DNA of 63,747 nucleotides, filler included, from Reticulomyxa filosa (Eukaryota; Protista; Foraminifera), in the NCBI GenBank assembly GCA_000512085.1. It is 15 parts of 15 records of this genome, joined end to end, with 100 filler letters (N's around TTAATTAATTAA, not from the genome) between each part and the next. Parts side by side here need not be neighbours in the genome. Positions count along the whole stretch, not along the records: positions 19,669 to 31,472 come from ASPP01001662.1; 14 more parts are not named here. One strand, given 5' to 3'. The notes under the pieces were generated by a model. The model ran no database searches, was not told the DNA's origin, and was given only the letters and a program-made list of their open reading frames with translations. The position numbers were made by a program, and so were the translations under genes. Of the stretch, positions 2,346-31,730 are shown piece by piece. The stretch's first letter is position 1. Each line of letters starts with the position of its first letter.

Positions 2346-3483
2346 TCATACACTTTCTTTTATTGTGTTAGAAAATGGCAAATCAGTCTTCGAGGATTTA
2401 AAATAAATTTGGCTTTATATCTTCTTGTTTTTCTCCTTTTTTTGGTTAACTTGTTTTTAGTACCCTTTTCTTTCAAAGTTTCAAATTTGGCTTGCAATGA
2501 AACTACAAAAATGAGAATAATTTGTTTTTTAAAAAATTGATCCCGAATTTATCTGCTAAGTTGATTTGAGATAGAGCGCTTACAACAAACCAATTAAGGA
2601 GTAATATACTAGTTCTTCGAATTTCATTAAATTGACCAATTTTTTAAAATACAATGGTATAAAGAGATATTTCAAATTTAAAGATAGCATATTCACGACA
2701 ATTTCATCAAGATTATTATAAATCCAGTTAATAAAAGAAACACGATCAAAGATATAATAAGAAAAAATAAAAGAATAGTAATTGTACCCGTGATATGTAT
2801 TTTTTAATTCTGATAAATTTCATAATATTCAATCACAAACTCAAGTAAAATGTAGATAGCAACATGATAATTTTAAGATAAATAATCTTGTTTGCACTCA
2901 AATCTCGATGTTCAACAATTTGCGCTCGTTTATTTCAAAAAATTCTGTTTTTGTTGCCAGTGCTTTTTCAAAGTACTTAACTGCTTTCACTGCATTATTT
3001 GGAAATAACCATTTAATGTTCGTATTTTTGTTCAAGCAACAGGCAAACTGTATTTACTTAAAAGGGCTTCCTCAAGTATTTATTTCAACACTTGGAGTTG
3101 ATAGTAATTTAAAAGATTAAGTGCTTAAAAATGTAATATCAACTTGCATTCCTTGATATTCAACATTTTATTTTGTTGGTGTTGAGCCCTTTCATCTGTA
3201 GAAAGCACTGTCGCTTTTTTTTAATGATTGTAAGAAGACATGTGTTAGGATTTGGTTTTTCGATTCCTGAATGTCCAATATCTTGCCAATTGCTTTGCAA
3301 AATTGCTATAAAAAATATTTTGAAATGGTTTGACTTTTACTTGGTGCACAAAAGCGCAAGGAAGAGAAAGATTCCATTCTCCTTCACAAATACTCTCAGT
3401 GTTATGAAAACAAAACAATGGAAAAGAGATCCTACATTTTTTGTTTTTTGAAAGGAAAGAAAAAACTAAAAAAAAATTTGGTT

Positions 3484-19887: not shown

Positions 19888-20793
19888 GTTCAAGATATTG
19901 AGGAGTTAGACCGATTTCAAGAAGTACCAAGAGAAGGTCCTTTTTGTGACTTGCTGTGGGCGGACCCCGTGGACGAAGACAAGGACCGCGACGAAACACA
20001 ATCGGGCGACGAGAACACGGATACAGAAATAACAACATGGTTTGCATACAATGAGACAAGACAATGCTCATATGTGTTTGGAATTGACGCAGTGGTGACA
20101 TTCCTGAAAAAAAACAATTTGACGGCAATTATTCGGGCTCATGAGGCACAATTTGATGGATACAAAATGCAATTTATCAATGAACAAACAAGTATTCCTC
20201 GTGTAATAACAATATTTTCAGCTCCAAATTATTGCGATGTTTATAAAAATAAAGGAGCTTGTTTAAAATTTGATGACGAATTGTTAAATATTCGACAATT
20301 TGTTAGTTCGCCGCATCCTTATTATTTGCCAAATTTTATGGATGTTTTTACATGGTCATTACCTTTTGTAGCTGAAAAAGTGACAGATATGTTGTACAGT
20401 ATTTTATCGTATGGAACTGATGATGAAATTGATACAGATGCTGCTGTAAAAGCTCAAGGACCTTCTGAAGTTTTACGAAAAAAAGGCGGGGTTTTGAAAG
20501 ATAAAGTTGTGGCGGTCACCAAACTTATGAGAATGTATCGAGTATTAAAAGAAAATCAAAATAATATCATTCAATTGAAACAATTGTCACCAAATCGTCA
20601 ATTACCTGCTGGTATATTACAAGGTGGACAAGCTGCTATTGAAAAAGCTTTATCAAGTTTTAATGAAGCCAAACGAGCAGATAAAGCAAATGATGCAATG
20701 CCTTTACAAGAAAAAGATACAAAATCCCCTAAAAAACAAGGACAAGTCTTTTATAGAGGTTCAAAAGATACCAAAGCACCAGAAAATAAATGA
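19888..20793 (+). CDS. CNA1: Calcineurin catalytic subunit A (PP2B), last exon; 5' partial
   Basis: CDLLWADP, IIRAHEAQ, TIFSAPNY, CnB-binding PHPYYLPNFMDVFTWSLPFVAEKV, CaM-binding KDKVVAVTKLMRMYRVLKE and autoinhibitory SFNEAKRADKANDAMP. Confidence 0.95.
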   Translation, partial: VQDIEELDRFQEVPREGPFCDLLWADPVDEDKDRDETQSGDENTDTEITTWFAYNETRQCSYVFGIDAVVTFLKKNNLTAIIRAHEAQFDGYKMQFINEQTSIPRVITIFSAPNYCDVYKNKGACLKFDDELLNIRQFVSSPHPYYLPNFMDVFTWSLPFVAEKVTDMLYSILSYGTDDEIDTDAAVKAQGPSEVLRKKGGVLKDKVVAVTKLMRMYRVLKENQNNIIQLKQLSPNRQLPAGILQGGQAAIEKALSSFNEAKRADKANDAMPLQEKDTKSPKKQGQVFYRGSKDTKAPENK

Positions 20794-21331
20794 TAGTTTA
20801 CAATTTTTTGTTTTGTTTTTTTTTTGTGCGAGTTTTGGCTTTGTTTGATTAAATTGCCTATTTTGTTGTTGTTTTTTTGTCTTGTCTTGTTCACTAAGCG
20901 TGCCAAATAAAAGCTACAAAGTCCTCAAAATATTTATTCTTTGTAAAAATGTAAAAAGATATCCGAAAAGGGCTTCTTCAGGGCAATTGTTTATTTTTTT
21001 TAACAAAAATTGACAAAGCTTTTTTGAAAATTTATATTTTACATACTATTGAAATTATTTATCTCAAAAAGAGGAATAAATAAATAATTTGTTGTAAAGA
21101 GAACTTATGTTGAACGATGTTGATCCTTTTTTGAACTAAGACAATACTGTTACACTTCTCTTTCGATAACCTTCTCGACTTTCCTTTGTTGCTTGCCGAT
21201 TATCTTTTCAGCATTTCATATACTTTTTGAAAATACTTAAAGATTTCAGTGGAAAAAAAAACATTTCGTATTACACTTAGTGCAACTTCTTAATATTTTT
21301 TTAAAAATGAATGAATAAATGAAAAAAAAAA

Positions 21332-21634
21332 AGATATCGACAGGGCTTGAATCCTGAAGATGATCACAATGTCGAAGTGATCACTGTAGGTTAGCTTGGG
21401 CCCCATAAGAGCGAAGACATTTGCTTTATGGAACTGGTCACCAACTTATGCGATAGCAGCCTACAGAGCACTTGCACATATGTGATTGTGATGGCAGTAT
21501 ACAGATTGGGCCCAATCTGGATAGTCTCAACACCTTTGTCTCAGCACTACAAAGGTTTTCAACTGCTCACATACAGCCCTAGGGCAATACGACCTGTAAA
21601 CTGTTGTTCCATCACATTATCTAGTTCGATATCT
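21332..21634. ncRNA. Candidate ~300-nt structured non-coding RNA, family unidentified
   Basis: About 45% GC island in much more AT-rich flanks, closed by a 9-bp terminal stem, with at least six internal helices. A T11 run follows its 3' end on the minus strand. Confidence 0.6.
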
Positions 21635-22305
21635 GATTTATATATATTTTCGTTTTTTATTATATATTAACATTTTTTTATCATAATAATCATTTTGTCA
21701 ATTTACATAATTTACACATATTTTTTTCATTCAATTGTCATTTTTGTCTGATTTATATCTGCAATAGATTAATATTATACAGAGTTTGTTAAAGAATTAT
21801 ATTAGTTACACAAAAGTTAAAGATTCAGTCAAATGATGAAATATATTCTAACAAAAGAATTTTAAATTATGTTTTTGTCAATGAAATAAATTTTTCAACA
21901 TGTAGGGAGATGAATCACCACGAAATGTTTCTAAATATTTTCTAAATATTTTCTAAATATTTTCTCAATATTTCCACTCTTCACCCGGAAAATCCTTTTG
22001 AAACAAGTTATCACGTAAATCAAAATATATTTTGAACAAACTTTGCTTCAACAAACAAACCATATCAAAAATGTGTTAAGCATAAAAAACAACGAACAAA
22101 CAAGGAAAAAATTAACCGCGTGCATCAAAACGAGAAAAAAACAAAAAAGAACGAAATTGTGAAACCAAACGAATATCATTAATTTATGATCCAAACCAAG
22201 AAATTAAAAAGAAAGGGAAAAAAAAACAACACGTTAAAAAATTAAAAGTATTCTGTGTTGAGGGACCAAACAATGCGCAATGTGACTGACTGGCAATATT
22301 CGAAA

Positions 22306-25300
22306 TCACACATGGCTCATCTTGTTTTGTCCCTTTTGAGAAAATCCTAAACTGTACTGTAAATTACTGTCCGTTGTGGTATGTTTGCTAATATCGCTTT
22401 TGGTATGACTGCTGTGCTTGTGACGATGTTTGGATTTGGATTTCAATCTTTGTCCATCAGTTAGCTCACTCAAAGCACGAACCCAATGGACGGACTCTTC
22501 CGGCATTTGAGTGACAACAAATACAGGGACGTCACTGGAAAAGGTGTAGCTTGATGACGAAGAAACAGAAGGAGATGTATCCGATGCTTGATCGGAGGGA
22601 GGGGGATTTGTATTAACAGATGATTGTGGCTTCAAGACAATTATGAATAGTCGATGAATAAGAGCTTCATTGTTTGCAATGGCATTGGAAAGAGACGGAG
22701 GATAGTCATGTAAAAAGTGATCCGTCTGTGATATATTAGCAGACGCATCATTCGAGTCATCAGCAGGTCGATACACATAACTTACGTCATTGATATCAAT
22801 TTTTCCAACGATCGGCAATTTGTCAGTATGTTTGGTTTTTTTTTTGGACGCTGCAGGACTTACTTCTGTTTCTTCCAAGACAATGTAACGGCAGTCCAAA
22901 CTCAAGCGCATGCGCTTTGTCTGCTTGTCCAATTCAATAATATCAGGTCTCGACAATACATTTTTTGTTTTTTTTGAAACGAGCATACGAGACCCATACA
23001 AGGTGATAAAGACACCGTTGACTAGTACTGCAATTCTTTCGTAATCTGTCAGTTTGTATTTGACAGCAAATTCCAGACAATTGTTGGCAATGTATCTTTG
23101 AAATTGATTCCATTCTTGGACAAGCTCGTCATTATTCGAGCTTTGTCTTTGCTTGTTTTGTATCAATGTCTGCATGTGTTCATATTCACTGGAAAAATGA
23201 CCCATTTCTTCAAAGCAATACCACAAATCCTGAAGCCAAGCATTTGCCAAAATGCGCAAAATCCACACAATATGGACTGTCTGATTGCCATCCAACGTTT
23301 GTATTTGGCCAGCATATGCCAATAGCACTCCAATTAATCCAATTCCAAGCAAAAAATCACAGGGCTGACTATAGATGGTCATTCGATACAAAAGAGTAAG
23401 CACCTTACCAACTTCGTTTGATTCGTGTTTCAGCAGAACATGCAGTAGTTCTTTTCCTTTTGATCGACTCAGTTGAAAAGCATAATACTCCCCGCCATGG
23501 TTGGATCGATCATGAAACATTTGCTGTTCCAAATACTCGTCAATGTTAATCTTGGCCCAAACTTCGTTCTCTCTGCCAATCATCGCGTTGTTGTGAATTG
23601 ACGCCGGGTTGATCACTCCGTCTTCGGACTTGGATTCCGACTCCATTTCCAACTTTGACTCATACTCGGACCACATATCCGAAGACTCTTTTTTTTGGGA
23701 TGTCTTGTTTGTATTGGCGCTTACTTTGTCCTTTGGCAAAGTCGCGGATAGCATGAGCGAATGCGACCCAATGCTGTTTTGCCTCTGTCCTTGTGATATC
23801 CTCCTCTGTTGATAAATGCTAAGTCTTTGATGAATTTTCAAACACGCAACGCACTCCTTTATTTGGCCATAGCTGCATAGCAGACCATAATCCTTTAACA
23901 GCGCATAGATATTGTCATTGTCCATGTGTGGAAATAAATCATTCAACAAGTACCAGATTTCGTCCAGCAGCATTTGTACTTCGCTGCCATTGGGATTGCG
24001 ATTGCTCTTTTTCATCGCGTCAACGACTCCGACGTATTTTTGTAGAGTCGCAATGATAACCGCCAAGACATGACTCTCCAATAGTTGTGTAATACAATAG
24101 TTATTGATACACAAGATGCGCAAGACGGCCGCGCATAACTTGATGATCTGCGGTGCTCTGTCTATGTTGTTTGCGTTGTTTGTGTTGTTTGTGTTGTTGG
24201 AATTGTTCGTGTTATATTCGTCTTGTTCGCAGTACGAGGTGATGAGTTTGTACAATGTCCGATGATGCTCTTTTTTCACAAACAAGCCAATTTCTGTCTT
24301 CTTTTCGTTTTCTTGGTCTTTTCCTTTCATTCGTTGCCACGTCTGTTGCAAACAAACGAGCAAAGAAACGTGTATGTCTTGCTTCATCGCAATGATGATG
24401 TGATGATGTTCCAGCTCTTGCTTTTTGTTTGCGACGGGCATGTGCTGGTTGCAAAGGGTAATGAGTGATGTGACGACGTCTCCGGAGGCGCGCCATAACT
24501 CCTGCAGCAAATCACTACGTGATAAATTGGATAACAGCACGCTAGTGCGATGGACAATGGTGATATGTCCGGTATGCGTCGTAATGATCTGCAGACACAC
24601 TTCCATGAGTCCCTTGATCACACCCTGCTGATGGGACTGCGCTTCGTCGGGCAATTGCATTTGTTTGTGTTTCTTGGCGTGGAACTTTACAGACCTCATG
24701 TGGAGATCCTCCAAATAAAGCAAATGCGTATCGTACGATGTCATTTGCACCAAACACAGAATTGCGTCGCAAATGATGTTGAGGTTCTTGTGACTGGTGC
24801 TTACGCTGCTGCCGCTTTTGCTGCTGTTTTCGTTACTACTGCTCACGCTCCTTTGTTTGGACCACAGCGGACTGACGTCGCGATTGGACTGATTGTCGGC
24901 CTCCTTCTTGTCCTCCGCCGCTTGTTCGCGAAGATAGAACTGCGCCATCAGTATGCACGCGTGCAGTCCCTTGCTCTTTAGCACCATGCCGTTCAGTTGT
25001 TCGTTGTACTTTAGCATGGAGAGAAGCAAGGGTAGCATCAACTCGCACAATATTTTGTCCTTGCGATAATTGTGTAGCAACAAATCAATGATGCATTGAA
25101 TGTAAGAAGGATCCGAATGCGACGCTTTTTTCTTTTGTCCATCCTTGGCCTTTGGATTTGCTGTGTCGTCGCTGCTTTCTTTACCCATCTGCTGAGAAAA
25201 CTCCAGAGACAACAACATCTCCATGTTGTCGTCGACACTCAGCAAATGCCACAGCATGTAGCAACACTTGTGTGTAATATCGTTGTCCTGCTCCTCGCTC

Positions 25301-26161
25301 GTGCTTTGTATTTTCAGCATTTCCAACAGCACCGCAATTGCGCCGTTGTTTCCAAGCAATCGCTTCATCTCTTCCACTTGGTCTGGCCGTTGGTCGTGTC
25401 TTCGTATGAAATTGTGCAGCAATTTCAACACTTCCAGAAACATTTTCTTAACTTCCTCTTGACGATAGGTCGGCGATTGTGATTGCGATTGTCTCTGTTG
25501 TTGCTGCTGCTGCTGCTGCTGTGTATCCAATGGTAAAAAGCGAAAGAGCTGCGAAATAAACGTGGTCGCATGGGCGCTTTGCACAAGTGACTCTGTCAAA
25601 GAGACGGCATTTTGTTTGTTTTGATAATTCACGGATAGCAATTGGCTGTTGTTTCTGTTCTTGTTGCTTACAATATATCTGCGATTCATTTCTTCGATCA
25701 ATTGAAGCCATTGTATCTCATTGTCCACCTAATCCATAATACAATACATATATACATATATATATATATGTGTATATATTATTATTACGCTTTCTTTCAA
25801 CGTTTAACTTTGCAAAACAATTCAATCAATGGATTATTTGTCACTCCTTGCAAATACTTTGCGGGAAAGCCTTTTTTTGTCGCTGACATTGGATACGGCT
25901 GTGCAGTGTTATCTCTCGGTTTTGTCGACGTGGCACTGCTCGTCCTCATCTCCTCTTCATCTTCCTCTTTGTCATGCTTGCTTTCTCTCTTTGTTGAGTG
26001 TTGCAAGACGGCCATGGAACGCTCGCTCACTTTGTCGTTGTTGTCGGCATAACTGCTTTCAACGGACCACGTTGCTTGTGAAGACCGTTCGGAGTCGAAC
26101 TTTTCCTCTTTGCCGAGCCCTCTTTCGCGTTCGCGAATACTGTTCTTTTCATCGTCGTTAC

Positions 26162-26192
<31 letters not shown>

Positions 26193-29100
26193 GTTGACAA
26201 GTGGCACCTTTTTCAACGGCTGAATGGACACACGATTATCATTGAACTGCAATGCATTGCCAGCGTTGCCGCCTTTGCGATAGGCGTGCAGTGTCTCGGT
26301 GTTGTTGACAGGCTGTTGCGAGGACGAGGACATAGACATCGACGTGGACGTCGAGGCAGAGGCGGAAGAGGACGTGGCCAAGAACGAAGGAGCAGCCCTC
26401 CGACCCAAATGAGACAGCGGTTTGGAAGTATTGGATTTAGGCAGCGACAGCGATGGCGTGGCAGACGTGGAGTTACTACTGCCACTCATCAAAGGTCGAT
26501 TTTTTAACACGCCTTTATTTGGGCGCGACGACTTGCTCGTTATGGTGCTGTTTTCGCTTCTCGAGTCCGAAGAAGAGCTCGACGATTTTTGCATTTGCAA
26601 TCCGCGTCGAATGATTGTCACTGACGTATGCACACTTTCATTGTCATTATCATTGTCATTATCATTGTCATTATCATTGTCATTATCATTGTCATTATAA
26701 TTATCATTGTTATTATCTTTTGCATTTGTATTTGTATTTGTATTTGCATTTGCATTTGCATTTGCAGTTTCATGTCCGTGTGTCTTTGCAAGTGGCTGCG
26801 AATGTAAATTACGCAAAGTCATTGTTGGCTGAGCAGCGGAAACATTGGGTTGATAGGGTTTGAGTCGTGGAACAATCTTGGTGGTAGGCGATTCCAAGAG
26901 ATCCTTCAGATCAATGATCGGCTCCGTTGTTGTTGTTGTTGTTGTGGCTGCGATTGCTGCATCCTTTGGCTTGGCCTTTTTGTGATCCGAAGTTGGATTA
27001 GACAGTTGACTGCTAGTATTGCTGCTCTGAAGAGTGCCACCCCATGTTCGAGGCACGTGAGATACACCGCTTTCGCTGTCGGTCCCTGTCATCATGCTAT
27101 AATCACTGCACGAAACAGAGGTCTTGGACGTATGCGCGAGTTCTCGATTGGTGTCATCTTCGGTCGTGCCGCTGTCGTCCGGCATCAACGCGTGGGACTG
27201 TCTTCCATCCAATCTAATCATATATATACATATATATATATATATAATATATATGCACACACACACATACGCTTTGTTTGTGTCGCAGACAAATGCAAGA
27301 CAAGACTTTGTTTTGAGACGGAAAACAGTGCACGAAGATATTGCACTTGTTTGCACTGCTGTTAATACTATTAAGACTAGTAAAGCTATTAATGCTATTA
27401 TCACTGTTGTTACTGCTTTGGTGCATTATGGTTGTGGCGCTCTTTGGTGGATTGATGAAAACATTGGCGTTTCTTCCATACGGATTCACATTTGCATTTC
27501 GATTGGCTGGATTGATTTGTTTCGGAATCGAATTCGTGTTGCCGGTTTGATTCTCCGATTGTTTGAACAGCGATATCAGCGAATGATTTCGGAGATGGTC
27601 GCCCACCGAGATCTGCGTATCGGATTCGTTGTCCGTGTGACTCGTCTCTTCCATTTTGTCGCTTTCGTAGCCACTGTGAAGAAGAAGGAGGGGCTCTTCT
27701 ATCGGCCAACGCTTATCTCCAGTCGCTTGTTTCGTGTCCGCGTTTGTTGATGTTTGTGAGTTGGCATTGGACTTGGTATTCACATTGACAGTTGAATTTA
27801 CATTTGTATTTGCATTTGCATTTGTATTTACTTTGGGAAGAGTTGAAGACAACCAAGGCTTATTTTTTGACACGCGATCTTCCAGTGGGCCCTCGGCAAG
27901 CACAAATGGGTTGGAGGAGTCATTGTTATTGCTCTTTTTGCTCATGGGCGAGGTGGTAACATTTTCGCTCATAATGTGTGATGCCACAGCGAGGATCTTT
28001 GAAATTTTGTCAGCAATCACGTTCAAGACTTTGGACGAGGAGATCTTTTTGCCAAACTGTCCCTGGAAATACTTTTCCAACTTGAGCAACTCACCGTCTT
28101 GGAACAGCTTCATAGTATTGTCCACACCTTGCACTGGGTCAAACACCAATGCATAAATGCCATTCACATGCCGCAACATTTCTTGTAACGACTCTTCGTC
28201 CGTGTCGTCTACGTGTATTCTGCTCTCTTGCTGTGTTGTTGTTGTTGGTGTGTCACTGTCGTGGCCGTTGCCATCGTCACTCCTTGCACTTGCACTGGTT
28301 GTTGTTATTGCCACAGTGGGTAATTGACTCAACAGGAGTTTGTCCACAGCCGTACTGTCTTCCACGTCTCCGGACAATTTCTTCTCGGCTTGCAGCGCTC
28401 CAAACTTGGTGCGTCCTCTTGGCGTGCTCGGAGCATTGGCATACACTGCAGGCTCTTGTTTGGTACCAGCCTTTTTTTTTCCCTTTGCAGCTGCTTTGCT
28501 TTCGCTGCTTTTTTTGTTGTGCCCTTTCAGACTTTGTTCTTTCTGGTCTTGCGTTTCCGATCTCGTGTCGCTCTTTTCGCTTTCCAACCTCTCCAGTTGT
28601 AATCCAATATGAAGCTGTCTCTGTGGCTGTTTCTCTTCCTTCCTGCTCGCTTCCTTGTCCGAATCGCCTACGCATTTCATTACAAAGTCATTGTATCATG
28701 TCGACAAGTTGAAAACACATCACGATATTTAAAAGAGTCCAAACTTTTGGGTCCATCTTCCGTTTCGCTTTGGATAGTTTCTGTCTCTTCCTCTTCACGC
28801 TCTTCTTCTTCTTCTTCTTCTTCTTCTTCTTGCTTTCTTTTGTGTTTGTCCTTGGGATGAGATACCAACTGCTGTTCATAGCGCTTTGACATCTTTTGTT
28901 CCATTACCAAGACATCTTGTTTGGTCATTGGATGCAACAAAGGAATGAATAGCTCTTCTTCTTCTTCTTCTTCCTCTTCTTCCTCCTCTTCATTGTTGTC
29001 TGGCTCATCTCCGTTTTCTTCTTCCATATCTGCGTCTTCGTCACCATTGTCATCTGTTTCTTCTTCACTTTGAGAGCGAGGACCGGCGGTGGACAGCTGC

Positions 29101-30400
29101 ATATATACATATATGTAAATATATATACATATACATATATGTGTATATGTGTTTCACAAAGAAAGAGATAGTTCTCGAAACAGTGTCGTCGGATAAGACC
29201 AAAGATGAAACGCCTCCACGCGATCGATTGCTCGACTTGGTGAGCAAAGACAGACGATTGTTTGTAGTGTCGAGTCGGACTTTGTGATCTGACGACAGCG
29301 TGGACGTGCGTGGGATGGTTTTGAAAAAGTGCAAATTTTGCTGTCGAGTGTTATTGTTGAGTTGGCCATGTTTCAAAGAGACTTCGTCGTGACTGGCGTT
29401 GGAGTCGCTTCTCTCACTGTCGCTGTTGTTATGACTTTGGCTGTAACTGTGGCTATGAGTGTGACTGTAGCTCTTCTTCAGACTTTGGTTTTGACTTGGA
29501 CTTTGACTTTGACTTGGACTTTGGCTCGATTGCTGAGTTAGATTTCGACCGAAAGCAGAATACGCGAGATTCGTGGTCGGGGCAAACATTTGCGATTGCT
29601 GTTTGGATTGCAGCCACGAATTCTTCAGCGCGACCAAAGACATTTGTTTCCAACGGAAATGAGTGGCCGACGTTTGCTTTGAAATAAACTTCATCGCAAA
29701 GAGTAAAAATTCGTCCAATTGCAGTTCTGGATTTTCAACAAAAAGATGATACACCTCAGACACCTCGCTTTGATTCAATTCGGCCATGCCAATGTCGGCC
29801 AGCTTTTGGCCAAATTCCTTTACATTCATATCTCTGATATTGGTTGTCTTTTTTTTTTTGTGCGTTTGTGAATGCGAGGAAGAGGAAGAGGAAGAGGAAG
29901 AGATGATGATGATGATGATACGAAAGAAGCACATTGTATCCATTGCCATGCGTCATTTTCGACTACATACATTTCCATCTTTCTGGTGTACGACGTTGGC
30001 GAAGAGGTCGTCATCATAATGTGTCGCAATTTGGAAATAAAGTCGGAAATGCAAAGCATGTTGACATCGTTGTCGCCACTTGTGTTGTTGACAAATAATT
30101 GCGTCATACTGGCAGACATCTCTTCGCTGTCTTTGCGATTGTCCTCCTCGTGACTCGCCTTCGCATTCGAATGCTCAAGTGCTTTCATCGCTTTCACAAA
30201 CTCCTCCAACGTCAGATAGTTCTCTTTGCTTTTGCTCGCGTTCTTTAATGCCCCTTCGATCTCTTTTAGTATTTCCTCGCGCTTTTGTATTGTTTGTTGT
30301 GGGGATTGACAAAAGTGGAGAGGTCTTAGCACGTTTTATGCATTTTTGTCTATGCACGTTGCCATGTGTATAGAAAGGGGGTAGGTATAAATACATATAA

Positions 30401-30442
<42 letters not shown>

Positions 30443-31063
30443 ATTTATGTGTATATTTCTTTTTTTTTTTTTTTAAAAAAAAACCATACAAACTGCATAG
30501 GTCTTGGCCAATGCCAACGTTGTCGTCAAAAAGGTATCCATATCTGCACTACCTTCGCTTTGCAATACTTGCACGAAAAATGCAACGGTTAACAAGTTGG
30601 ATTTGGCACTGCTCTTGTTTTGTTGCGTCGACTGCCAATACAGCAAGTAGTCGAAAATGCATTTGACGTCAGTCATCGACATTGCACGTGTTTGATAGTG
30701 TGTCACAATGTTGTTATAAAACTGCGCAAAAGTCATTTGCGTCTGTTTGTTTAATGTGTTTTCGCAGTGCTTTTGGATCATTTGGACAAATAAATGTTCG
30801 TCCTCCGTTGCTTTTTTTTGGCTGTTCATCATCGCATTTGTCTCCTCACGTTGTTTATTTTTCTCTATATAAGCCATTAATACATTCGACAGATACGAGG
30901 AGATTTCGTTGCCTTTCTTTTGATTCTTGGTCGCTTTGGAGACAATTTCGTTATTATTGCCTTTCTCTCGCAAATAGGCCACAAACAAACTTACTGACTC
31001 TTTGACATGTGCACTATAAAATTCTCGCAAGTTTTCCAATTGCGTTTCTATCAAACTACCCAA
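22306..31063 (-). CDS. Very large multi-exon protein: EF-hand-like N-terminus, low-complexity linker, ARM-like repeats, C-terminal PH-like domain
   Basis: Consecutive same-strand ORFs separated by (TA)n/(TATG)n-containing introns. EF-like helices LTLEEFVKAM and LQLDEFLLF, ARM-like GAIAVLLEML...CCYMLWHL, and PH-like terminal helix EESVHWVRALSEL. Could be more than one gene. Confidence 0.6.
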
Positions 31064-31730
31064 ACCATATTTTCAAAAACACCAGAAAATTTTCAAATGT
31101 GAAGCCGGTTCCACTGTAAGAAGCGAGAAGCTCTAAATGTATAATGCTTATCAGATCAGAAGCCGGAGATTTTGATGATACTGGCTTCATTGATGTTTGT
31201 TTTATGTTTTTTGTTCAGTGCCAAAAGACCTTTTTTCGCTTCCTTTCTTTTTTTTTTCATTTCCAAAAAGAAACGCGTTATCAAAAATCTGCTAAAAAAA
31301 GAGAACCTACAGCTTTTAAACCTCTTTATCGATTCTTTATTTGCATATAGCTTTGCTTTTGTTTTTTCTGTTATCAACTTTTTGATAGATATTTAATAAA
31401 AAGCTAAAATCAAAAATTCAGTAATACTTGGCACTGAAGAACACAAACTTTTTTGTCAATTGTAGACCAGTGNNNNNNNNNNNNNNNNNNNNNNNNNNNN
31501 NNNNNNNNNNNNNNNNTTAATTAATTAANNNNNNNNNNNNNNNNNNNNNNNNNNNNNNNNNNNNNNNNNNNNTATGTATGTTTATATGTGTTTTTGTCCA
31601 TTCTTTTTGCTTTGTTTCATTTTTGTTTCGAAATCAAAGTACATTAACAAACAAGCAAAAAAAAAAAAAATAAAAATAAAAATAAAATCAAAAGACGGAG
31701 GCATTTTTTCACCATTCCTCATTTTCCGCA

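Follow-up and report, generated by a model that had tools for sequence, protein, structure and literature searches.

The closest described counterparts of the locus studied here are the type 3-like Pol III genes of AT-rich protists and the telomerase RNA genes of ciliates and plants. These genes are GC-richer islands of about 300 nt in AT-rich intergenic DNA, they have a TATA-like sequence near -30, and their products combine a terminal stem and a multi-domain fold with a 3′ hairpin that is followed by a T run. In RNase P and MRP RNA, the segments CR-I (GNAANNUCNGNG) and CR-V are universally conserved and form P4. SRP RNA carries in helix 8 a symmetric loop of the AGGU/AGCA type, which lies between Watson-Crick flanking stems, and a GNRA-type tetraloop. 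In telomerase RNA, the template is single-stranded and comprises one telomere repeat or more with 2-5 additional nt; a pseudoknot lies next to it, and TERT is bound by a stem-terminus element. Pol III type 3 genes of related supergroups have been reported to carry an upstream element of the CCCA type (PMC8287931). In Rhizaria, telomeres have been described for two species only and no telomerase RNA is known (PMC8287931, PMC13746701); a search guided by Pol III promoters gave no supportable telomerase RNA candidate in this group (PMC8287931), and the foraminiferal telomere repeat is undescribed (PMC13746701).

We identified a 303-bp island without annotation in contig ASPP01001662.1 of Reticulomyxa filosa (assembly GCA_000512085.1) which shares with the type 3-like Pol III genes its size, its setting in AT-rich intergenic DNA, a terminal stem, a multi-domain fold, a 3′ hairpin with a T run behind it and a TATA-like sequence near -30. 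It differs from them in that the 170 nt on each side show no CCCA-type upstream element, in having no family-specific motif, no verifiable template and no identified pseudoknot, and in being known from sequence alone. Positions are given along the window, which is the whole stretch of DNA that was analyzed (63,747 nucleotides). The contig itself is 11,804 nt long, and its deposited annotation holds two genes. The locus is organized as follows:

19951-20793, plus strand: calcineurin-A-like open reading frame (gene fragment), with its stop at 20793
21332-21634: the island
22306-31472, minus strand: gene for a lineage-specific protein of 2817 amino acids, with its stop at 22306 (deposited annotation)

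The location between two convergent genes, as described in the initial annotation, agrees with the deposited annotation. The island lies on the 3′ side of each gene and is sense to each, 540 nt from the calcineurin stop and 670 nt from the stop of the 2817-aa gene. The proteins closest to the calcineurin-A-like product are other R. filosa proteins (93% and 80% identity). A GC content of about 45% between AT-rich flanks had also been noted, and was measured as 0.43-0.44 in the island versus 0.20-0.25 on both sides; the sequence separating the island from both genes has 20-27% GC. The GC island is sharply delimited, its edges matching those of a 9-bp terminal inverted repeat exactly. No vector, plasmid or phage contamination was found in comparisons with plasmid and phage collections. 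An exact 12-nt direct repeat (TCTGATTTATAT) overlaps the right edge of the island at 21632-21643 and recurs 115 nt further at 21747-21758, which is improbable by chance even given the AT-rich context. Further to the right, an 11-nt unit (TTTCTAAATAT) is present in three tandem copies at 21928-21971 in the intergenic DNA.

Nine helices and one loop-loop pair had been proposed for the island. All nine helices are exact Watson-Crick reverse complements, and the two 6-nt segments of the loop-loop pair (21368-73 and 21416-21) are exact complements as well. Comparison with dinucleotide shuffles, a check that the initial annotation had suggested, confirmed an excess of folding on both strands. The MFE is -96.1 kcal/mol on the plus strand (z -4.52) and -96.9 kcal/mol on the minus strand (z -3.91), and on each strand 0 of 100 shuffles were as stable. 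The island is the most extreme 303-nt window of the 11.8-kb contig on both strands, the remaining 303-nt windows having a mean z of -0.16 (sd 1.13) and a minimum of -2.7. The island has eleven perfect inverted repeats whose stems are 7 nt or longer, compared to a shuffle mean of 2.46, and 0 of 1000 shuffles reached this count. Exact self-matches of at least 7 nt are inverted in 14 cases and direct in one, so that the excess is one of self-complementarity and not of repeated words, which points to folding rather than to arrays of binding motifs. The island is a real, discrete and non-random unit. Its structural elements, to which no strand is assigned, are:

21332-21340: left arm of the terminal stem (AGATATCGA), 9-bp exact complement of 21626-21634
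21626-21634: right arm of the terminal stem (TCGATATCT), exact complement of 21332-21340
21341-21356: small hairpin, CAGG and CCTG around an 8-nt loop (P 0.96 on the minus strand)
21361-21486: domain II, either a local hairpin with a stem or a long rod
21361-67/21377-83 and 21384-90/21460-66: hairpin and stem of the local form of domain II
21363-68/21481-86, 21369-72/21476-79 and 21375-79/21469-73: helices closing the rod form of domain II
21400-21434: tip hairpin of domain II
21487-21616: domain I, with closing stem 21487-94/21609-16
21532-39/21549-56: robust hairpin of domain I
21502-19 and 21576-85: perfect 18-nt palindrome and 10-nt palindrome of domain I, either as local hairpins or paired with each other in a rod

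The predicted ensemble favors a fold in which the 9-bp terminal stem (pair probability of 0.72 or more on each strand) closes two long irregular rods and the small hairpin. In a minus-strand RNA the rods would occupy positions 19-148 and 149-272 and the small hairpin positions 279-294, making it the final hairpin ahead of the terminal stem and the T run. The initial annotation had drawn the helices as local hairpins, and although these helices are exact, the local-hairpin model lies 5-6 kcal/mol above the ensemble fold on either strand. These models leave the exact fold ambiguous. For several arms there are two perfect partners; 21363-70, for example, can pair with 21377-83 or with 21485-92. 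Arm 21396-403 is complementary to 21508-15, and the 6-bp loop-loop complement competes with a long-range helix. A motif centered on TTGGGCCC occurs in two copies 110 nt apart (21394-21409 and 21504-21519), one of which lies within the perfect 18-nt palindrome and can also be read as two inverted CCAAT boxes. Among viral contigs, the 18-nt palindrome was found in one virus only (three contigs); its flanks there are unrelated to those of the island, and the match was rejected as a relative and attributed to chance.

The flanks were inspected for signals of transcription, and two candidate elements are present on the minus strand:

21322-21332, minus strand: T11 (A11 on the plus strand), candidate Pol III terminator, abutting the terminal stem
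21660-21666, minus strand: TATATAA, at -32 to -26 from 21634

Both bear out the earlier remark that the minus-strand flanks suit a Pol III transcript. The T11 run is weak evidence for a Pol III terminator, since T/A homopolymer runs are common in the genome and many contigs end in them. The specificity of TATATAA is low, the entire flank being AT-rich, and the plus strand also has a TATA-like string near -30 and runs of T4 and T6 located 16-27 nt beyond the stem. Many R. filosa contigs start or stop in long A/T homopolymers, as seen at the ends of L002, L003, L004, L005, L007, and L009, and the assembly evidently breaks at homopolymer runs, which weakens any argument built on a single T run. 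The strand had been left open in the initial annotation, and it is true that folding energies, G-U counts and the composition of unpaired bases fail to separate the strands; G-U pairs are few on both (6 of 87 pairs on the plus strand and 4 of 82 on the minus strand). The loop at 21345-21355 is loosely similar to a B box or T-loop on the minus strand, matching the B-box consensus (GGTTCGANNCC) at 7 of 9 specified positions when compared by eye. No A box, which in type 2 Pol III genes stands 30-60 nt upstream of the B box, was found by eye, and ARAGORN finds no tRNA. A tRNA-derived or type 2 Pol III gene was rejected because of the missing tRNA-like match, the only loose likeness of the loop to a B box and the missing A box.

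The explanation that we favor, if tentatively, is that the island is an orphan gene for a small structured non-coding RNA, perhaps transcribed by Pol III from the minus strand. Such an independent gene would give rise to a highly structured RNA of ~305-315 nt that belongs to no recognizable family, the minus strand being the most economical choice. Transcription would start near 21634, 26-32 nt downstream of the TATA-like box, and would end in the T11 run (21331-21322), as in a Pol III gene with an upstream promoter (type 3-like). The ends of the RNA would be closed by the 9-bp stem, the junction would bear two arms of ~125 nt, and a short 3′ hairpin would stand beside the U tail. This architecture would be typical of RNP scaffold RNAs, with La/LARP-type proteins at the 3′ end. 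The transcription of the island, its strand, its polymerase and any function are things that we only infer. The island may represent a new class of non-coding RNA.

The strongest competing explanation, which the initial annotation did not contain, is that the self-complementarity acts or arose in the DNA, the island being either the remnant of a non-autonomous transposon with 9-bp terminal inverted repeats or a cluster of palindromic protein-binding or cruciform sites. This explanation was raised because the island has four perfect even palindromes of 10-18 nt and because G-U pairs are equally few on each strand. The number of even palindromes of at least 10 nt (four, compared to a shuffle mean of 0.33) was reached in 0 of 1000 shuffles. 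Four hairpins have palindromic centers of four self-complementary nucleotides (GAUC, AUAU, GGCC, and CUAG), and for an ordinary RNA tetraloop the chance of a self-complementary center is 1/16 each; perfect even palindromes with such centers are not explained by selection at the RNA level. An origin in the DNA is also consistent with core helices that are all Watson-Crick and equal on both strands, with the two alternative perfect partners of several arms, and with a repeat-rich genome, for which 30% repeats are quoted in PMC13746701. Like MITEs and foldback elements, the island has perfect terminal inverted repeats (9 bp), a length of about 300 bp, many palindromes and a presence/absence pattern between paralogous loci. 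It differs from them in being GC-richer than its flanks, where foldback elements and MITEs are usually AT-rich, and in having many independent internal helices instead of a single long foldback. It also differs in lacking a target-site duplication at its ends, since the left flank, an A run, and the right flank, GATTTATA, share no direct repeat. No second copy was found in the 11.8-kb piece and 49 kb of other R. filosa contigs (of an assembly of 102 Mb), and no predicted protein from such a copy was found either. The DNA pattern of the 3′ hairpin followed by a T run was also searched for in metagenome contigs and was found in none of them.

In favor of the explanation at the DNA level, the duplicated locus has the island in one copy but not in two others. 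Such islands as a general feature of convergent intergenic regions in this genome were considered but not seen in L001 or L002, the contigs with calcineurin paralogs, neither of which carries the island itself. As a synteny query, the C-terminal 1140 amino acids of the 2817-aa protein, in which no Pfam domain was detected, were compared with 1.84 billion proteins (cluster representatives). This search found 19 cluster representatives, which are fragments and paralogs, and the 15 sources that were looked up (8 by cluster and 7 by contig) are all R. filosa. Four of the copies (L004, L005, L007, and L013) lose similarity at window position 22481, ~175 nt before the stop codon, and this shared end indicates that part of the 2817-aa gene behaves as a dispersed repeat unit. 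Only L008 and L006 continue into the intergenic region; both are colinear with it, decayed and without the island. L008:1-1603 is colinear with window positions 23489-20731 at 73-91% identity and stops 62 nt into the end of the calcineurin coding sequence; compared with the window, it has four or more deletions (~227, 169, 514 plus ~150, and 59 nt). The 514-nt deletion takes in the island:

21323-21836, no strand assigned: 514-nt segment absent from L008, which spans the A run, the island and a further 196 nt on the right side

The 6-nt sequence AAATGA forms a direct repeat at the boundaries of this segment in the window (21317-22 and 21831-36). L006, the closest of the paralogous contigs, is 90-92% identical to the window in the gene and ~69% in the intergenic DNA. 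Following a homologous A-rich left flank, L006 carries ATATCGACA, a 9-mer identical to the nine bases that follow the initial AG of the island; the next ~45-120 nt are unrelated or can barely be aligned, after which the right flank resumes. L006 thus seems to have retained, at the position expected, the initial 9 nt of the island. From this one 9-mer and from alignments of AT-rich sequence, we read the pattern as loss of the island from two decaying duplicates rather than as its insertion into the window copy. The deletion breakpoints in L008 and L006 differ from the ends of the island, which argues against such an element at the DNA level, and the 9 nt apparently left in L006 favor loss over insertion. 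If the reading as loss is right, the island predates the duplication and 62 perfect base pairs were kept while the neighboring DNA diverged by ~30%, which would suggest selection on pairing. On the reverse strand of L006 (3445-3425), at the place where the island is expected, a 14-nt palindrome (TGACCA TT TGGTCA) is found that uses the same half-site as TGGTCACCA of the island (21435-21443). In L001, a ubiquitin-like reading frame without a called gene is located at 3100-3330, downstream of the calcineurin paralog RFI_04354.

Overall, we consider an element that acts or arose at the DNA level possible but rather doubtful. Returning to the orphan RNA gene, this reading draws on the sharp-edged GC island at an unannotated intergenic position, the folding z-scores, the excess of inverted repeats, the non-coding score of the reading frame described below, the T11 run together with a TATA-like box at -30, the absence of a target-site duplication and of a second copy in 49 kb of other R. 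filosa contigs, and the possible retention of the first 9 nt in L006. It is opposed by the lack of a homolog and of an Rfam family, by the equal folding of the two strands with few G-U pairs on both, by the even palindromes, by the commonness of T/A runs and TATA-like strings, by the missing CCCA element and by the two paralogous copies of the locus without the island.

A structured element in a long 3′ UTR of one or both of the convergent genes, with a role in stability, localization or termination and possibly active on both strands, is improbable in our judgment. The island is located downstream of both stop codons in the sense orientation of each gene, it folds equally well on both strands, and it is flanked by an A run and, on the opposite side, by T-rich sequence, all of which would suit such an element. 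However, with a median intergenic distance of just 426 bp in R. filosa (PMC13746701), it would be unusual for UTRs to reach 0.5-1 kb; the low-GC sequence that separates the island from both genes also argues against a UTR element, as does the absence of the island from two paralogous loci, which are themselves decayed.

To a similar degree we regard it as unlikely that the island belongs, as a very divergent member, to one of the known families of housekeeping RNAs (telomerase RNA, SRP RNA, RNase P/MRP RNA or U3), although a length of ~300 nt, paired ends and two domains would fit. At gathering thresholds, Rfam gave no match in the whole contig piece. At E-values up to 10, searches with sub-ranges of 561, 173, 191, and 81 nt returned only noise of 10-15 bits, from unrelated models that include snoRNAs and miRNAs (ceN54, ES239, sR11, mir-351, MIR394, and SNORA30), the ceN54 and sR11 matches being weak and far under their gathering scores. 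Neither the strict search nor the relaxed one, which the initial annotation had called for, matched a family; the lack of any match even in the sub-searches of 81-191 nt argues against a divergent family member. Scans for CR-I, CR-V, CR-IV, box C/D, the Sm site, UGUNR, and helix 8 found nothing canonical. Box C (RUGAUGA), expected near the 5′ end, has no exact occurrence on either strand, and none of the CUGA strings that could be box D, expected near the 3′ end, sits inside the terminal stem; a box C/D snoRNA or U3 was rejected.

Two of the families named in the initial annotation were not supported. With RNase P/MRP RNA the island has in common a P1-like terminal stem that closes several domains, one domain that can be drawn as a four-way junction, and a short hairpin before the 3′ strand. 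It differs in having neither CR-I nor CR-V nor an Rfam match: the best CR-I matches on both strands have 2 mismatches in 7 specified positions and miss their partner, no CR-V of RNase P was found inside the island with 1 mismatch allowed, and the best MRP CR-V has 2 mismatches. SRP RNA resembles the island in length, paired ends and a Pol III-like end, and yet no SRP covariance model matched at E-values up to 10 in the sub-ranges of 561, 191, and 81 nt. The string that echoes SRP helix 8, pointed out in the initial annotation, does exist: on the minus strand, 21596-21555 reads CAGGUCG ... GAGCAG..AAAAC. As a structure it fails, because in the register homologous to helix 8 the stems that flank the symmetric loop are mismatched, and the sole register that does pair yields a different 3x3 loop. 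In place of the tetraloop there is a palindromic extension of ~20 nt centered on CUAG, with no GNRA or GNAR. The echo would be located at RNA positions 39-80, near the 5′ end instead of in a central S domain. There are also no 5′ Alu-domain hairpins (helices 3/4) with UGUNR, the two small adjacent hairpins of the island being at the 3′ end of the strand that has the echo.

Among the known families, telomerase RNA is the sole remaining candidate. That the island is a foraminiferal telomerase RNA, transcribed from the minus strand by Pol III, in which CUAACCUA would template repeats of the TTAGG type, is nonetheless very improbable. The 3′ hairpin beside a U run is shared with the Pol III telomerase RNAs of ciliates and plants (general knowledge; PMC8287931). 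The only telomere-like template string in the island is the 8-mer CUAACCUA (21394-21387, minus strand). It partly coincides with a 7-bp stem, and ~19 short periodic strings of a comparable kind occur on each strand by chance. No templates of the TTAGGG, TTTAGGG or TTGGGG type are present in the island, and the absence of the canonical TTAGGG and TTTAGGG types argues against this assignment. No telomere repeat was found at the contig ends examined, and no literature on small RNAs or telomeres of R. filosa was found.

A reading frame is open across most of the island:

21395-21670, plus strand: 91-codon open frame, judged non-coding

This frame (80-91 codons) spans 240 of the 303 nt of the island and ignores its edges. 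Its codon score of 0.078 is ~4 sd under that of local coding sequence (0.289 ± 0.05), yet above that of off-frame sequence (-0.31 ± 0.17). An exact look-up of its product gave no record, and no relatives were found in translated scans of metagenome, viral and prokaryote sequences or in a word search of 5.8 billion proteins. The concern that the segment might prove to be a coding exon was thus examined, and from the codon score and the lack of relatives we judge the frame to be non-coding. Of all explanations, a small unannotated exon or gene at 21395-21670 is the most improbable: a 91-codon frame would arise by chance in only a few percent of cases by our estimate, but the low codon score, the lack of a homolog in the protein and DNA collections searched and the disregard of the island edges stand against it, and coding does not explain the extreme self-complementarity.

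The non-coding RNAs of foraminifera are essentially uncharted, and an orphan element of ~300 nt offers a concrete and cheap target. The island is a well-defined lead rather than a discovery, with helices that may have been kept intact by selection. Should it turn out to be a DNA-level module or a foldback element, it would document a type of repeat in a genome with 30% repeats. Should it be a telomerase RNA, it would be the first for Rhizaria and would add this group to the Pol III telomerase RNA lineage known from plants and ciliates.
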